A stretch of 63,547 bases of DNA, filler included, from Platydemus manokwari (GCA_037951405.1; 6 parts of 6 records of this genome joined end to end with filler, not necessarily neighbours in it); one strand, 5' to 3'. Shown: positions 19,192 to 29,596, counted from the whole stretch's first letter. Translations and numbers: made by a program. Notes: generated by a model from the sequence alone, not told the origin.

Positions 19192-19849
19192 TTTTAAATT
19201 ATTTCATATATAATATTCAGTTAATTCGTTTAAGAATTAAATTATTCCTAAAGTTTGAATTGTTCCCATTTAGATTTTCAAATGATAATTTATATTTATT
19301 TTTAATAATGTTATGCAAATATGAATGACATTTGAGTTTTAATTTTATATTAACAATAATTTCCGTTTGTTTATATGATAATCGCCATGGAAATTCTACA
19401 TTTTTTTCATTTGAGTAGTAATAACGTCGAATTTTAAATTCTAAATTTAAACAACATTTTTGAAATACACCTAATGAATAATGAAAGATAAAACTGATTT
19501 TCATGAGCGACATAATATTTGGAATAATAATTGAGAAAGATTACCGAATATTATCAATGGTTCGAAATTTCCCTAAGATGGTAATTATTATTTCTATTAA
19601 ATTACAATTGGTAACAGAATTTTAATGTGAAATTAATTTGTTTTGAGTTTATTTTAAGATTTGTTAATGGAATATGTGTCAATATCATAATAGTCTTGAT
19701 GTAATTTAATTATATTTAGCATTTATCAAATTATTAAATATATTTAAATTGTTTCTATTCATTGCTGTTCTGCCATTTAATTGAATGGGAAACTATTTTA
19801 TTTACTTATATGATTAAATTTTCACATTTTTTTCGTTTTTCACTGTTTC

Positions 19850-20930
19850 CTCTCTTTTGCATTCCAAACCATTTAACAGGTATATTATGTCCAAATATCG
19901 ATCTCATTCTACATTCAAAATCATCACAGCTATTCTATCCAGTCCATTATATCAACCGATTACGTCATTCCTAGCACAACTTTTATATTATTTGGTTTTT
20001 TATCCGATTATTATTTGTCTCCATCTCGATATTTTATAATGCTCCTTTTATTGACCAATGTTTCTCCTCATCCCTTTTAATATCTTTTAGTGTTTCATCA
20101 CAGTTGTCATGAGATTGGCTTGTCAAATCATTGATAGTTCCTGTTAGCATCTGGCTTTTTGACTTGATTTTGAGATATGTCACTGAATCATCCCTCGATA
20201 TTTCTCCTCTCTTCTGGAGGCAAGTCATCTTGAATCTTAGTATATTTTGGCATCCATTGTCCAGTGTTTTGGTCAAAATTGCGTTTGATATCTAGGAGAA
20301 TCTTCTCTTTCGAGATATCTTTTCGGTAGGGATTTTCGCCATTCATTTCTGTCTTTCAATTTCAAATAATTGGGAGTTGTTTTCAAATATTTTTCTCTTT
20401 TAAAGCGGATAATTTTGAATAATATTCGATTTTCTTACACAGCTATAAATTGTGTGACATGATGACCCATTTCTAGAGATGGTTTGCTTGGTTTTAGAAT
20501 AAAATTAGGCTGATTTTTTAGTTGGTTTGCCTTGTGCCTTTGTGATCGAAAAAAATGTCTGCAAGAATAATCTTGATGTCGAATAATGTTTTCAAAAGAT
20601 TTTAATGGATCTAATTCGCTTCATTAATATCCTGCTGTCAATGACTTCGTAGAAGTCTTTTATTAAAGAGAAAAAAATAAGATCAAATTTCTTCTTTCTT
20701 TGTTTTAGGATATGCCACAATCAAAATTCCTAAACCTTATTTTAAAAAGATTTCCCCTTTAAAATTTCTCGCATAGAATTAACTTTAGATTGTGAGATTC
20801 TGAAATTCTTAGATGCCTCTCGTATGGAGAAAAAATCAGCCGTCTCATTCAGAACAATAACAACTACACCAATTTTATTGTCATTGTTAATGATAAGATT
20901 TTTCATAGGGGAAGATGTAATCACGATATG
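19850..20930 (-). mobile_element. Possible decayed DNA-transposon coding region
   Basis: Collinear broken minus-strand ORFs (20742-20924, 20034-20276); the first carries an HTH-like SIREASKNFRISQSKV. No catalytic motif recognised. Confidence 0.25.
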
Positions 20931-21665
20931 AGAGGTTAATTGGTTAGTGACAGTTGCGCAATCACTAATGACATTTATGAATCTCCCTTACAGTTATAAT
21001 CACCATGACGGAATTGTCTTGAGTTTTTCGCCTATTCTTCACGTTAATTCATATTTGTCGATTGATTTGTAATTATGGAATTGAATGGACACACACACTC
21101 ACTAACTATAATTGGTTTTCAAAGAAAATTTTGAATTTTCAATGCTGATTGATTTTACGATGATGCAACGAACGCCATTGTTAAATATTCAATGCATTCT
21201 TGCAGGGTTTTATTTGGGCATTGTTTGCAGTTGCACAGTCTGTGTTTCGCATTCATAGCGATAAAATATATGATTCTGTATTAATGGACATGTTATCAAA
21301 TGTGTTCTCGTAAATATCGATTTTTATTAATTCGCACGGGATATCTGAAAATTAGTAACAAAAATTTATAATTTATGTTTTTATAAAATAATTATTTAAT
21401 TATGTTAATAATATAAATAATAATTATATTGATAACATAATTAATAATTATATTAATATAATAATAATCATCAGTATTTCAATGGCTTTAACCTCACAAA
21501 CGTATCTGTTACGTAATCGGATATCGTGTCATGGACCGAGAACGAAAATCTTATCGAATAAGGTTATTAATGCACGCTTATCTGAATGAGATTGAAGCGA
21601 AATTTTATGGATTAATAATTGGAGCGGCATTTGTTTACAAAGCAATGCACTGATATAGCAAGCAT

Positions 21666-21673
21666 TATATAAA
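21666..21673 (+). promoter_or_regulatory. Putative TATA box of the Cys-rich protein gene A
   Basis: TATATAAA about 50 bp upstream of the ATG at 21720. The AT-rich background weakens this. Confidence 0.35.
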
Positions 21674-21719
21674 TGTCATGCTATCGGAGTTGAGGTTAAA
21701 GTGTTGAAACATTTTTATA

Positions 21720-22194
21720 ATGAAATTATCAACAATTCTCATAATTTTTCAGTAAGATTTGTAAAATCGATCGTTATCGATATTGATTTGTGCATATTTA
21801 TTTGACTAGGATGATCTATCTGAACGCAACATTCGCTCAACAACAACAACCGAGCACATTTAATCGATGTCCATTTTATTCGTTGACGAATTGCCAATGG
21901 TGTTCTCAATTCTATCCCGATCCGAACCAATGCGATTTGTGTGTGCATCAGAATAACAACTGTTGCTTCGATACGAGAATTCCATCGGTTGCCAACCCCA
22001 GCTTATCAATATGCCAAAGACAGAGAGCTTGTACTTTTATCAGCTTATCGAGATGTGCAAATTGTCGATCACTGGGATTCGGGTGTGTCAATTGTGTTCT
22101 CAATCCACAAAACTGTTGTGTCAATCCACTGAATACAGCAAATAATCTCGTTGCTTCCAGATTTTGCAATGTTTTTACCATTCAACGGCAATAA
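21720..22194 (+). CDS. Small secreted cysteine-rich protein A (138 aa, two 8-Cys modules), unknown family
   Basis: Exons 21720-21751 and 21810-22194 (58-nt GTAAG..TAG intron) give signal peptide MKLSTILIIFQMIYLNATFA, followed by two C-x7-C-x2-C-x(6-9)-C-x2-C-x6-CC-x15-C units. Confidence 0.85.
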
Positions 22195-23882
22195 TGCGCA
22201 TATTGATTGGGTGGGGGGGGGCGGTTTTGATTTTAATTTCGAGAGTATCTCGACAAATACATTGTTTTAATTGATTTGTCTCATTAATTATAAAATCAAT
22301 ACATCAATATATTATCAATAAGATATCCGCATGCTGATTGGTCATGATAAGAGTTGTCTAAATATTTCTATTTTGTATTCTCACGAGCCATTTAATGGAG
22401 ACAGTTAAGGACAAAGGTGATTTTTATTGGAATATTTCTCGACAAATCCACAACACGGATTGTTGTTTTATCATAATCATTGGATCTCATCTGAAAAATA
22501 AAATAACAAATATCATTTATTCAATCTGATTTATTCAGACTACTCATTGTTAGAATTTATGATAAATAATTTGCATGAGAAATATAATTATAATAAAGTA
22601 ATCAATTATCGAGCATATCTTTTTATAATTCATTTGAATTTTCCGAAAACGTATATTTTTGGGTTGAAATTCTTAAATATTTTCCCCACTGTTTGACATA
22701 ACGACAACATTGCACTATAATTGCCTTATTAATTATCTTTAAACATTTCTAATTTGTTAATAACTTGCTAATTATGTTGTGTAAATATTGATTTACGATA
22801 TTCTACTAATGATTGCTTAAAACTAGATCATGCCAACATTAACTAATTTTTCGAGTGCCACGTTAATTATATTTCAATTATTTGCTGTGAGGAAAAATTA
22901 TAATGACACGTTTTCACAAAAACCGTCACACAAAAACAAATCAATCAAGTACTCTAATATCACCAAAGAGAAATTAATTTTCGACTTCTTTGAAAAAATA
23001 GAAATTCAGTTATCAACAAAACGGAAATACTAAATTAAATAAGTTATTGCACAGTGATTTCTCTAGCCAGAGTAACTTTCCGTGGGGCTCCTTTTCAGGA
23101 AAAATGTTGAAAATCAATGCTCTAGTGTATTTAATATTTCTTTTCAAATAATTAGAATTCTTCTCAAGTTCATAAATAAAAAATTCAAAATCTCTTTGAA
23201 GAATGAAGAATTGAATAAAATTTATTGATTTTTGTAACACACTCAATAAATTAAGAACTTTATTTTATCTTAAATTGAGCGAGAAATAGAAAATTAAAAT
23301 AGTGAAAATAATTTAAATAAAACTTACTCGCTTTCAATCAAAATTCAGTCTATTATTGATTGAAAAGGGGTGAATTTATATTATTTCTCAGTGATAATAT
23401 AAATGAAAATCAATAGAATCAATAATAAAATTATCTAGAATATAAGGCATTATAACTGTATATAATCTATTATTTTTATAAATTTCCTCTATCGATAAAT
23501 ATATTGAGTTTTACACACCACTTAATTCTAGAATCAGACATCATTCCACGTGTGAATGTTTAGAAAATTCTCGATGGTTATACTAATGTTGATTGGAAAC
23601 ATTAAATTATGTATTGCTCATTTAATGCCATAGAGGCAATATTATAGAACTACATAAACAATTTATTTACGATTGAGCTAATTATAACTTTGTCAGAACA
23701 AACACAACAACACGTTAGCACGATTAGCAAATCTTCCCACCGAAAATTCATGAGATCAGTTCTATCTGCAATATAATTGATTGGATTCTATCTCAACATA
23801 TTTTTGAAGCCTTATTGGTTTAAAAATACTGGCAGGGAAACAATTACATAAGAAACGTGTTTCAAATCATTTTCATTTTGAC

Positions 23883-24193
23883 ATGAGATCAACAATATTG
23901 TTTTTAATATTGCAGTAAGATTTTCGTTTAACTAATATTTCAATTATATTAATGACTATTTAATCAGAGTGATTTGTTTGAAACAAATGTTTGTGGAGAA
24001 TGTACTGCCGACTCAATGCAAAGATTATAATTATAAAAATTGTCAATTCTGTGTCGATAATTATTCCACTAGAGATGCTTGTATGAAATGTGTTGGAGAT
24101 TACAATCCGATCAAATGCTGCTTTAATCCAACTATCCCGACATTTATTGATCCAAGATTATCGATATGCCTATCTGTGGAAGCGAATAATTAA
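23883..24193 (+). CDS. Small secreted cysteine-rich protein B (85 aa, one 8-Cys module), paralog of A
   Basis: Exons 23883-23914 and 23968-24193 (53-nt intron at the identical position and phase to gene A). Protein: MRSTILFLILQVICLKQMFVENVLPTQCKDYNYKNCQFCVDNYSTRDACMKCVGDYNPIKCCFNPTIPTFIDPRLSICLSVEANN. Confidence 0.8.
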
Positions 24194-25792
24194 TAAAATG
24201 AATCACGATTAATTTAACAGTGTTAAATGAGAACCTTTATTATTGATGATATTCAAGATTAAATAAGAATCCCATATTGAGTTACCTGTGTGTCGAGAAT
24301 AATATAATGAAAAGACACAAAAATTATGAACATTATCTTTATCGTGTTCATATAAAAAAGTGGTATTTACCATAGAATGTAAAAACATCAATTATAAAAT
24401 TAATTCAAAAGCTTACTCACATATCGAACCTCCTTTGTGTCCATATATATTTCAATTTTAATTTAAATTTAAAAATACATTTTCACCCAATAAAAATTTT
24501 CACAACTAATTCGTGTGACTTTGAACCAATAACCTAAACTTCTAAAAATCATCATAACTTTATGTCAACATTTTCAAAAGTCAACAATTTGTAATTATAA
24601 GTGTTTGTTATTAATTTCTCCTTTATTCATGATTCTTCTAAAATGAAAAATCTATGTAATAATTATTATTCGTTAATTCGCTGAATTTTGTTATTCATTT
24701 TGTTTTTTGTTCTAATTTATTTCGATTTCTCCTGCAGTAAATTATTCACTTTCATCTTAGTTTAAAATCATTATTTATAATTTTAATGCTGTTTCTTCCA
24801 GATTCTAATCTATTAATAATCATGTCTAATAATTATCACATTAAAACCAAAAATTGAAATAATACAATTCATAATTAATAATAAAATTATCAGTTGTTCA
24901 CGAATTGTTTTTAATAAATTACTCAAGTAATTAAAGATGTTTTACGAAAATCATATTAACAGTTTTTACTATCAAAATTGTTTATAATTTGACACACTTT
25001 TAACGTTTTCCAAGCTGGTTCAATTCTGGAAATATCATTGATTGGGCTGGAATATTAAGCTGATCTGAAAAGACCAGTTAATTTGTTGTCCTGGACTAAC
25101 TTTGATTCACTTAACTGATTGGTTTTAAATTTGGATTTAAACCGATCTTGCCTATGTAACATATAGCGTAAAAATAAAAGTAAATATAGAAAAAATATTG
25201 ATTCTATCCTATTTTCTCTGGAATTTCCCATTTAAAACCAAGCTGTGATAACTCTTAGTGCAAAAATTACGAGATAAAAATTTTATTTTAACATTTAAAT
25301 TAATTAAACTTTTGTTAGACTCAGAATTAACCATTGAATTTGCTTCGCCAATCCATGAAATGGAGAGATTTAAAAGTGTAGTGATGGAAAATAATTAATT
25401 TGTGCAATTTTATAAATAAAATTTACAATTTTGTTTAAAGGAATAATGCTTGGATGAAATTTAAAATAAAATTGAAATTAAATGATAAAATTACTTCATG
25501 CTTGCAAATTAATCATTATGACAAATTATCAAGCACCTCTTTATTAAGTTAAGATGATGACGTAACAACAGACGTTGAATATGGATTACAAATATCACAT
25601 CACAATCATTGAAGTATTCGAGCTTATATCATTCAAGTTGTCATAGTAACTTGTAGATTACCATGACAACTTAAATAGTTATTTTACCAATCCATGAATA
25701 AGAAAGCAAATAATTTGAAAACAACAACCAATCATGAAACAAATAATAATTTGTAAATGATGAATTTAAGATTATTTATTTAAGATTATTTT

Positions 25793-28531
25793 AGTGAAAA
25801 CGTCAGTCGTTTGCATCAAAATTTATTATTTTAAAAATCACATGCGATATTTCGAACATTTAAATAAATCTAAGATTTATCTAATTTCCCGATGTTTTTG
25901 AAATCTTTTAGAGCCACTCATTTCGACCAGGTTTCGTCTGTTCCTTGATGTGGGCTTAAAAATTTCAATATCCTGAGAGGACCTTCATAAGGTACTCCAT
26001 TATTGTGTGTTTTTTTTTCACTAAACTTCTTCGCCAAACGCAAAAATTTTATAACCTCTTTTTAAGCATTGGATTTCCTAAAGTTTGTGGCTACAGATTT
26101 TAGCTGGTTTTCGTGTTTTTGATGATCTAATCGTGGTATTGTGGTTCATAAATCGTAACTCATGGATATGAGTTCGTGGTCCAAACAATATTTGAAAAGG
26201 GGAATACTGAATTGAGCTCTTATGTGTTGCATTGACGATAAATACTTTCCGAGGTATTAATTTATTCCAAGATCATTTTTCTAATCCCAACGTTGTTTCC
26301 ACCATGTCTCGGACTGTCATAATTATCCTTTCGGCTAAGCTACTTGCCTGGTGTTAGTATTGGGAAAACATATCGCTAATTCCTTCATTTTCATTCCCTG
26401 GAAGACTTTACTCCGATCAGTGTGCATTGGTCTTGGAGCATCATAACAATAGATCCAATTATCGATTATATACTTAGAAATTCCGATCTCATCTTATCAA
26501 ATAAATAGCCTTTAGCTTAATAACATACTGAATCTATCTAGAATAATATTAGGTATCAGTCATAAATTACTCAAAATGCGTGAACTGTTCTAGAGAGTCA
26601 ATCCAGTGTATACTTTGTACTTTGTTGTCGATGCTTTGTGATATATTTGGCCAGAAGTAAATCTTTTTAATTTAATCGATAAATTTATTATTACCGATAT
26701 GAAATTAAAACTCATGAAGGTATTTTGTTAGTTTCCTGCGAATGAACCTCTGGCACAAAATTTTACTTTTTGGCTTGCTTTCGTTAAACTCTGTAAACAA
26801 AAATTTTTGGATTATCTTTGAGAGTTTATTCCCGTTTCCATGATTTGATCCAGTCTGAGATTGAAGTTCAAAATCGAATCCCAATAAGTTTGCAAACCAA
26901 GTTAGAAACTGAGTACTAATCGATTTGTTAGTTTTCTTCATATATGTCAATGCCTTGTAATTGTACCTGAACACACGAAAATCGGGAATAATTATTCCTT
27001 TAGGTTTTCAAAATTCTCCTCACAACTCAGGAGTGCACTCTAATTTATTGTCCTTTTCAGTGATCGTCGTATTTAGCAGGACGCTAATTAGTGCGTAGTT
27101 TTTGATTAATAATCTGTAATTATTACATAATTCTAGGAACGACCTCAATTCAATAATCTAGTTCCAAAATTACATTTTTCGGGATTGATATTGAAACCTG
27201 ACAATTTAATCAACCTGACATCCTTAATGAGTTTCTCATTGTGTTCCTCTGTATTTTTCTTCATTACTCTAAATTATCGTGCAGATAAACAAATCCTTGA
27301 ATATAGTATTCATTAGACTTAGAAACGTTAATGTTGCAGTACATTATCTAAAAGGTAGTCTGTTTAAACAGAACTGCCTAGTTCTAGTGCTGAACGAGGT
27401 TTACTACTTAGAATCTTCCTTAAGTTCGAACAGATAACATTATTGGACTAAATCTATCGTTTTAAAACTGTCGCACCATACACCAAGTCCAATAACGTTT
27501 CAATATTAGGTAGTATAAACACATGTTGATCGATCCATTTTATTTGGAATTAAGATCAATGGAAAAGTTCAAGGGCTCTTACAAAGCTTTATGGCGTTAC
27601 TTTCAAGAAGATTTTCTTGAATTTTCGTTTCTATGTTTATTAGTTACCTTCTGAGATTTTATGCAATAGATTCCCTTTAGCTCGAATATCGTGCTTCACC
27701 AAATCAGTTAGTCCCAAATTGACTTATAAAAATTAAGCCATTTTCTTTTAAACAGCTATTGAATGAAATATCATTGTTAACCTTGATTGATATTGTTGTT
27801 CTCATAGTGTTTGGAGATTCCATGTGATTAACTGGTGTACGATAATATTCCTTTACACAAAAATCTTCTCCATGACGTTTATCGGCTTCTTCGGAATTAT
27901 CTATTTAAAAGTGGCAACGAACTCTCTTCTCCTATCGTCAGACATTGCAAAGTCGAGAGTAAATGTCTCTTTCAATTTCTCGCTATTTAGATATTTCAAA
28001 ATAAAGTCTTGAAACATCTTCGTTACTAATTTCTTGATCCCAAATTTATAAATTCGATGTTTTTCATCTAGCCTTTGATGGATTACCTCCAAGTTCTGGA
28101 CTTGTCGTACACTGTTACAAGACGTGAGAAAGTTTTCAAAAAAGATTACTCAATTTCTTCATTTGAAATATCATCTTTGAAACAGCTGAATTAGTGTCAC
28201 AGTTGTCGGATTTCATCTCTCACCAGCATATCAACTGTAAATGATGATTCGATTTGATTTAATCTGGCAAAATCCTTTGTTGTCTGGAACCATTTATCAA
28301 CAATTTTTGAATTGATGAATCGAAGAATAAAAGCTTCGAAATCAATAATTCCGGAGTCTTTAGGGATAGATTTACAAAAATTCTTTGCCTCTCTTATTTT
28401 TTGGCTCTCGCAAAAGCACATATTGCGTCGTTGTTGCTAGTAAAATATCGGTCATTTCAATAAAAATGTATTATTTTAAAAACCACGCGAAATTTTTCGC
28501 ATATTTAAAAAAATCTAAGATTTATCTAACT
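25793..28531 (-). mobile_element. Degenerate Ty3/Gypsy LTR retrotransposon with about 92-bp LTRs
   Basis: Diverged direct repeats at about 25793-25884 and 28439-28531, flanked by ATTTT on both sides (candidate TSD). Gag-like remnants at 28197-28421 and 27901-28092. RT remnant PNIETLLDLVYGATVFKTID. RNase H end YKALTYMKK..TWFANLLGFDFELQSQTGSNHGN (26705-26974). Integrase remnant NWIYCYDAPRPMHTD downstream, giving the Gypsy order RT-RH-INT. Confidence 0.85.
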
Positions 28532-29596
28532 ATTTTATTTCACAATTGTTTTTACTAAAAAGTTCACACTTTTTTACTTTAAAGTTACTTTAAAATCTAG
28601 AATTGTAACGTAATTGATTACTTTCTAAGATTTTTGTATAAATCCCGGATTGAAATACCAAATATTTCGAACAATTTTTGTGCTCAGCATTATTATTCAA
28701 TTATTGATGATTACATAACCGATTTTTTGTTGAAACAAGTATTTAAATTTATATCTTGTCATAATGATTTAAAAAATATTTCGGGTAAAAACATAAATAT
28801 TAAAAATAATTATTAGAGAATAAAAAACAGTTCGAAAATTTTGAAAATTCATAAATAAAATCTCAGTTTTAAACTTCATTAATTAATGCCGAAATGTGAA
28901 TTTACAACTGTGAACAAAAATATAAAAGAAAAATGAATGTTTTAATCAGAGGCTTTAATTGTTAAAATGAATTTTATAATAGTTTTAAACAAAGCTAAAT
29001 CATTACAAAATTGAAATACAAGGTTCACCTTAAGTAGATAAATGATTACCATAACAATAGGTTATAATGATCAATACCTGTCTAGTTATACGTCAGTTAA
29101 ATTGTTAATGTTTCCATGATCGATTTGTAATGACCTCACCCATTAAATATAACAGGAAAGGCGATTCCACTTATTAAGCACGTTATTTTCAGCAAATTTA
29201 AGTGAATTGGAGACTTTTATTTTTCTTGAATTGTTCTTAAAATTGACGATATGACTTATTGCTATCATAAAAATGTACTTTTATTATTCATGCTTACAAT
29301 ATTGCCTACAATCACTACTGAGATAAAACTATTCTATGTTATCAAACTGATAGTATGGAGGTACTGTTATGTGTGATCAATATTCGAACATTGAAATAAT
29401 GAAATTACATTAAAGAAAGATCAAAATCATTTTATACATAATATATGTTATCAAATCTGATGAGAATTTCAGAATATTGGCAGTAAAATGAATAATATTG
29501 GGTCTATAACTTAAAAACTGGAATTTGACACCAGATGTAAACACTTGTGTGTGTGCTGTAGCAAATCATTAACATACACGTCATTTTGAAGCTCTA

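Follow-up and report, generated by a model that had tools for sequence, protein, structure and literature searches.

Within the window, the whole stretch of 63,547 nucleotides (nt) of Platydemus manokwari DNA that was analyzed (GCA_037951405.1; six parts of six records joined end to end with filler), we examined the piece at 19192 to 29596 (10,405 bases, 28.6% GC, zero N). This piece carries two small genes, here called gene A (21720 to 22194) and gene B (23883 to 24193), which were read from the DNA and translated exon by exon. Each has two exons on the plus strand, and 1,688 nt separate the stop codon of gene A from the ATG of gene B, in agreement with the initial annotation, which had placed two same-strand genes about 1.7 kb apart. 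Exon 1 is 32 nt long in both genes (21720 to 21751 in gene A and 23883 to 23914 in gene B) and consists of ten codons, including the start, followed by the CA of a Gln codon. The introns of gene A (21752 to 21809, 58 nt, GTAAGA...TAG) and gene B (23915 to 23967, 53 nt, GTAAGA...CAG) are both in phase 2 and split this Gln codon as CA/G and CA/A, respectively. Their first nine bases, GTAAGATTT, are the same in the two genes, and both are T-rich before the final AG. Both introns are also richer in AT than the exons, with a GC content of 27.6% in gene A and 18.9% in gene B, versus 40.8% and 33.2% in the respective second exons. Exon 2 of gene A (21810 to 22194, stop codon at 22192 to 22194) encodes the remainder of a signal-like segment followed by two cysteine-rich modules, A1 and A2; exon 2 of gene B (23968 to 24193, stop codon at 24191 to 24193) encodes the signal-like remainder and a single module, B. 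The products are about 138 and about 85 residues long, and both stop codons fall just past the last module. The DNA and the exon translations thus bear out the common structure described earlier, a 32-nt first exon and a phase 2 intron inside the signal-like segment. The list of unspliced open reading frames (ORFs) does skip both first exons, as had been pointed out: its frames begin at GTG codons at 21790 and 23969.

The three modules are copies of one eight-cysteine framework, C-x7-C-x2-C-x6/9-C-x2-C-x6/8-CC-x15-C. Measured from first to last Cys, module A1 lies at 21868 to 22014 (x7, x2, x9, x2, x6, CC, x15), module A2 at 22030 to 22167 (x7, x2, x6, x2, x6, CC, x15), and module B at 24017 to 24169 (x7, x2, x9, x2, x8, CC, x15; A1-type), all on the plus strand, and each spans 46 to 51 residues. 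These spacings match exactly those first listed for the three copies. A six-frame regular-expression scan of 19192 to 29596 recovered zero copies of the framework beyond A1, A2, and B, and permissive tblastn searches of the piece with gene A, gene B, and the relative P0001 described below detected no further or decayed copies. In 200 shuffled versions of the piece, neither the full framework nor its five-Cys core occurred (0 of each). Modules A1 and B share 41% identity (BLASTP E value, 2e-10) and are by this alignment clearly homologous. Between A1 and A2 the alignment score is insignificant (BLASTP E value, 4.3), and the common framework is the sole link. The earlier description of conserved Cys spacing with diverging loops in a tandem duplication therefore held in the module comparisons and in the arrangement of the two genes, on the same strand 1.7 kb apart.

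From either ATG, the unspliced frame ends after 11 codons at an in-frame stop that sits within the donor, so the short first exon is meaningless unless it is spliced. Exon 2 of gene B contains one in-frame ATG before the Cys-rich part, 11 codons 5' of the first Cys. Since no hydrophobic stretch follows this ATG, exon 1 is needed to supply both the start and the signal-like segment. In exon 2 of gene A, an internal in-frame ATG at 21811 is followed by merely nine residues and then by a polar run. The first exons can also be compared directly: one repeat family (D2) pairs the exon 1 and donor regions of the two genes at 71% identity over 48 nt, with 21 of 32 bases identical in exon 1 and 9 of 12 identical at the start of the intron. 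By these alignments, the two genes are paralogous at the DNA level in both exon 1 and the donor.

When modules A1 and B are compared, synonymous differences (0.89 per site) exceed nonsynonymous differences (0.38 per site; Fisher P value, 1e-5). Identity is lowest at third codon positions (37%), compared with 56% at first and 65% at second positions. Proportions of differences and a contingency test were used here, as synonymous sites are saturated in this comparison and the ratio of nonsynonymous to synonymous rates is not estimable. Because silent sites are saturated, as in an old duplication, and yet all 24 Cys are kept across the three modules, the comparison indicates purifying selection since the duplication. 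Taking splicing signals, paralogy, and constraint together, genes A and B look like intact, genuine two-exon genes by sequence criteria.

A profile built from the three modules, a step suggested in the initial annotation, was searched against 1.84 billion representative proteins. Six matches were returned, of which P0001 (UniParc UPI0006054099), an uncharacterized protein of 137 residues in a singleton cluster, is the sole true relative. Gene A and this protein share 56% identity across 113 residues (E value, 6e-44), and P0001 keeps 16 of 16 Cys and has the same two-module layout and a hydrophobic N terminus. It differs in belonging to another genome and in offering no counterpart of gene B beyond its own first module, which is 42% identical to gene B. 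The remaining five matches (P0002 to P0006) were rejected as relatives: 60 to 95% of their 8-mers are repeated, and they lack the Cys framework. All five have E values of 0.001 or below (down to 1.8e-14) and match 13 to 29 profile positions many times over. They score by the sum of short partial matches, and E values obtained with short Cys-rich profiles therefore need to be checked against the sequences themselves.

Other searches gave a consistent picture of a rare family. Gene A, gene B, and P0001 were each used as queries in a word-indexed search of proteins, which found no relative beyond P0001 itself. When exon 2 of gene A was the query, the same kind of search missed P0001 despite 56% identity and several common 5-residue words, a false negative. 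Scans of metagenome, prokaryotic-genome, and viral contig DNA, with the alignment and P0001 as queries, returned no match, and exact matches of P0001 and of the unspliced gene A ORFs were absent from assembled contigs in public assemblies. The products of genes A and B are absent from public collections of 15 billion proteins. Searches of the literature by shared peptide words, the UniParc identifier, and Cys-pattern keywords found no published work on the family. By these searches the family is very narrowly distributed or rare in the data covered. Eukaryotic genome DNA lay outside these data, and the absence of relatives is thus weaker evidence than the numbers suggest.

Conservation between gene A and P0001 is strong in the A2-type module, so the two module types would predate the split of this genome from the source of P0001. 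Duplication appears to have occurred at the level of both the gene and the module, the latter within gene A. Gene B, as an A1-type single-module gene, could have come from a duplication followed by loss of the second module, or its origin could predate the addition of that module.

At their N termini, the exon 1 peptides of both genes have a mean hydropathy of about +2 (+2.0 in gene A, whose exon 1 supplies the initial half of the signal-like segment) and carry a single basic residue close to the beginning. In each gene, the hydrophobic stretch extends through the first nine residues encoded by exon 2. In P0001, about 20 hydrophobic residues run unbroken from the N terminus, with no charged residue, and are followed by a Gln-rich polar stretch. 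From the hydropathy and charge of the separate exon pieces, we infer that genes A and B encode a predicted signal peptide and that their products are secreted. Signal-peptide cleavage follows a rule of small residues at positions -1 and -3, and the predicted cut in the gene A product and in P0001 would leave an N-terminal Gln. With Cys counted as thiols, mature A and P0001 have a charge of about +5 and an isoelectric point (pI) of about 8.5, while mature B is neutral, with a pI of 6.2 and one N-glycosylation sequon. The products of genes A and B and P0001 are all rich in N, Q, and aromatic residues. Charge and composition do not discriminate among ligand, toxin-like, and matrix roles. Of the proposed lineage-specific, duplicating family of secreted effectors, then, the paralogy, the same gene structure, and the narrow distribution stand; secretion is plausible from the N termini, and the four disulfides and the toxin, antimicrobial, pheromone, or mucus roles are putative.

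Structure prediction and structural comparison, also suggested at the outset, were carried out with AlphaFold2 and Foldseek. Module B modeled with the three-module alignment reached a predicted local distance difference test (pLDDT) score of 65. Mature gene A modeled with P0001 and gene B reached 61, with the five models spanning 40 to 61. In both weak models, which came from independent runs, the two CxxC pairs occupy separate, consecutive short helices, in module B (residues 6 to 15 and 19 to 28) and in module A1 (residues 16 to 25 and 29 to 38 of mature A). This arrangement suggests a hairpin of two helices, braced from one CxxC pair to the other, in which the other four Cys would fix an N-terminal arm and a C-terminal loop. 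Foldseek comparison of the two weak models with the PDB yielded 0 matches for one and a best E value of 7.8 for the other, and hence no meaningful structural neighbor.

The first reading of the locus had found no fit to the ShK, knottin, Kunitz, WAP, TIL, or three-finger patterns and had named a confident Pfam match as one result that would count against a new family. No Pfam family was found at E values up to 10 for either second exon, any of the three single modules, or P0001, and sequence and profile searches of the PDB returned chance-level matches only. Kunitz-type inhibitors appeared in the PDB phmmer search with gene B at E values of 0.26 to 1.7, and lactoferrin and a co-chaperone appeared in the PDB searches at 0.2 or worse; these candidates were dismissed as chance-level hits.

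Two groups of cysteine-rich proteins nevertheless resemble the products in part. The bacteriocyte-specific BCR peptides of aphids are encoded by orphan genes in tandem clusters and consist of a signal peptide and a diverged region that keeps the spacing of six or eight Cys (PMC3574423). Their clustering points to local duplication. Compared by description only, they share with genes A and B the orphan tandem arrangement and the conservation of Cys spacing alone, and probably also the N-terminal signal peptide; unlike them, gene A bears an internal module duplication. In Cs-alpha/alpha toxins and CHCH-type twin-Cx(n)C hairpins, paired Cys motifs lie on two consecutive or antiparallel helices joined by two disulfides. 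The low-confidence models likewise put the paired Cys on two consecutive short helices, but the motifs of those proteins are Cx3C or Cx9C, whereas the motif here is Cx2C with four further Cys in the module. Foldseek with both weak models returned no Cs-alpha/alpha or twin-Cx(n)C neighbor.

We judge it reasonably probable that genes A and B are intact tandem paralogues encoding small, secreted, disulfide-stabilized proteins of an undescribed and taxonomically narrow family that serve as extracellular binding ligands. On this model, a signal peptide about 20 residues long, whose coding sequence the phase 2 intron interrupts, would route each product to the secretory pathway, and its cleavage would yield the N-terminal Gln of gene A and P0001. 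Each module of about 50 residues would fold oxidatively after cleavage. The two CxxC pairs, on consecutive short helices, would probably be cross-braced to each other, and the other four Cys, at the first, CC, and last positions, would fasten an arm at the N terminus and a long loop at the C terminus. A binding surface could then be formed by the variable loops, with two modules displayed by gene A and one by gene B. The proteins would act outside the cell as binding ligands, most likely as defense or interaction peptides.

Several points weigh against this model. The gene models come from genomic DNA alone, and the structure models, and with them any putative disulfide pairing, are of low confidence at the pLDDT values given above. 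The predicted cleavage site of gene B is less canonical. The modest charge of the products does not favor a classical, strongly cationic antimicrobial peptide. Finally, the narrow distribution may come in part from short spliced eukaryotic genes being left unannotated.

A bolder version of the proposal would have the modules represent a new disulfide-rich fold, built from a double-CxxC helical hairpin, a CC pair, and a long C-terminal loop, in a group of secreted binding peptides that is restricted to a single, poorly sampled eukaryotic lineage and expands through duplication of genes and modules alike, or else the first free-standing, secreted, redox-active module resembling the PSI (plexin-semaphorin-integrin) domain. 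We regard this version as tentative and rather doubtful.

A related explanation is that the modules are highly diverged, free-standing PSI-type domains that are secreted and in which the CXXC motifs may be redox-active, through thiol-disulfide exchange as reported for the PSI domains of MET and integrins, rather than purely structural. The PSI domain is extracellular, comprises about 50 residues, and carries two CXXC motifs separated by a few residues; in MET these are C529XXC532 and C538XXC541, which are five residues apart (PMC9604360). The modules here are also about 50 residues long and have two CxxC motifs six or nine residues apart, preceded by one Cys and followed by three (C-x7-CxxC-x6/9-CxxC and then three Cys, all within 46 to 51 residues), so that at the pattern level they agree with the seven to eight conserved Cys and two CXXC motifs of PSI domains. 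This likeness had been overlooked when the module was called unrecognized: no Pfam family or solved structure matched it, as that term implies, but the claim that it fits nothing known was too strong. Several observations nevertheless separate the two. In the modules, the sixth and seventh Cys are adjacent (CC) and a tail of x15 follows, both constant across the copies here. PSI domains are embedded in large multidomain receptors, whereas these modules stand free in proteins of about 85 to 140 residues. Moreover, the Pfam searches, which included the PSI models, gave no match for whole proteins or modules at E values up to 10; the profile searches of the PDB, where plexin, semaphorin, integrin, and MET chains are numerous, recovered none of these; and Foldseek, with models too weak to exclude a PSI fold, returned no PSI-containing structure. 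The PSI domain is the nearest analogue at the level of the sequence pattern; membership in that family is not supported, and a diverged PSI domain seems to us an unlikely explanation.

It is similarly improbable that the products are secreted structural or matrix components, such as those of a coat, shell, cuticle, or mucus, in which the modules would be stable, cross-linkable units rather than bioactive ligands. The modular architecture of one or two modules, the N-, Q-, and P-rich composition, the modest or neutral net charge, and the single N-glycosylation sequon of gene B would suit such a role. Set against this are the very small size of the proteins, their lack of any low-complexity or repeat-rich spacer, and a maximum of two modules. 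Matrix families also tend to be large and multicopy, but public data show only a tiny family here.

We consider it very unlikely that the frames are nonfunctional, either chance ORFs or unexpressed relics. The genes are known from their DNA, neither product is among public protein collections, and the surroundings are gene-poor and AT-rich, with no other recognizable gene in 10.4 kb, all of which would fit such frames. Yet the framework occurs three times here and in none of the 200 shuffles, and each gene retains an unbroken frame and splice sites that match those of the other. Synonymous change outweighs nonsynonymous change, which points to purifying selection since the duplication, and a 56%-identical relative is preserved elsewhere. 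The slimmest chance of all falls to the suggestion that the CxxC pairs are zinc ligands of a small intracellular protein made from the unspliced second exons, with the first exons coincidental: zinc knuckles and ribbons also typically have paired CxxC motifs with 6 to 9 residues between them, and exon 2 of gene A has its own in-frame ATG at 21811, but the one such ATG in exon 2 of gene B stands only 11 codons from the first Cys, paralogy at the DNA level extends to the first exons and donors, the hydrophobic N terminus is continuous in P0001 and requires splicing in A and B, eight invariant Cys per module with a CC pair fit disulfide frameworks, no zinc-finger Pfam family matched, and the weak models put the CxxC motifs on helices rather than knuckle turns.

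Small secreted proteins rich in disulfides, the class to which the two products probably belong, have repeatedly given rise to toxins, defense peptides, symbiosis regulators, and signaling ligands, and new Cys frameworks occasionally yield new folds. What the locus contributes is an eight-Cys framework not described before, together with a clear gene model, a single independent relative, and duplication at the level of the gene and of the module. Eukaryotic genomes very commonly contain orphan families of secreted cysteine-rich proteins, and the present family is so far no more than a well-documented candidate: an undescribed family within a common, well-known gene class. Prokaryote-style ORF calling misses such genes, and eukaryotic annotation probably does too. 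Given that the products are absent from the 15 billion proteins searched, the family may seem rare because of a gap in annotation.

Around the genes, a TATA-like octamer on the plus strand at 21666 to 21673, 47 to 54 nt 5' of the gene A ATG, is a possible core promoter, for which it is weak evidence in DNA of 28.6% GC. In an alignment of the 5' regions, the corresponding position of gene B (about 23845 to 23852) is degenerate; if the octamer is real, genes A and B may differ in promoter strength or usage. About 250 nt 5' of gene A lies a pure A/T tract (21373 to 21467), which can be described as a 24-nt tandem repeat (3.4 copies, 81% matches) or as a near-perfect 47-nt palindrome. On the 3' side, a 16-nt run that is nearly all G, striking at this GC content, occupies 22209 to 22224, 15 nt past the gene A stop codon. 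It has no counterpart in gene B and may be a 3'-end or structural signal or a product of slippage. The frequency of AATAAA in the piece is not above that expected by chance for such AT-rich DNA and is uninformative.

Elsewhere in the piece, no tRNA or Rfam family was found, and the flanking open frames matched no Pfam family. The region at 26.2 to 28.2 kb is slightly richer in GC and holds many short minus-strand open frames with no Pfam match, one of which reached an E value of only about 1 against retroviral-type integrase cores. An 88-nt direct repeat (25797 to 25884 and 28442 to 28529; 81% identity, not extending further) brackets the GC-richer stretch at about 25.9 to 28.4 kb, and the region between the two copies is possibly, if unproven, a heavily decayed and much-interrupted mobile element.

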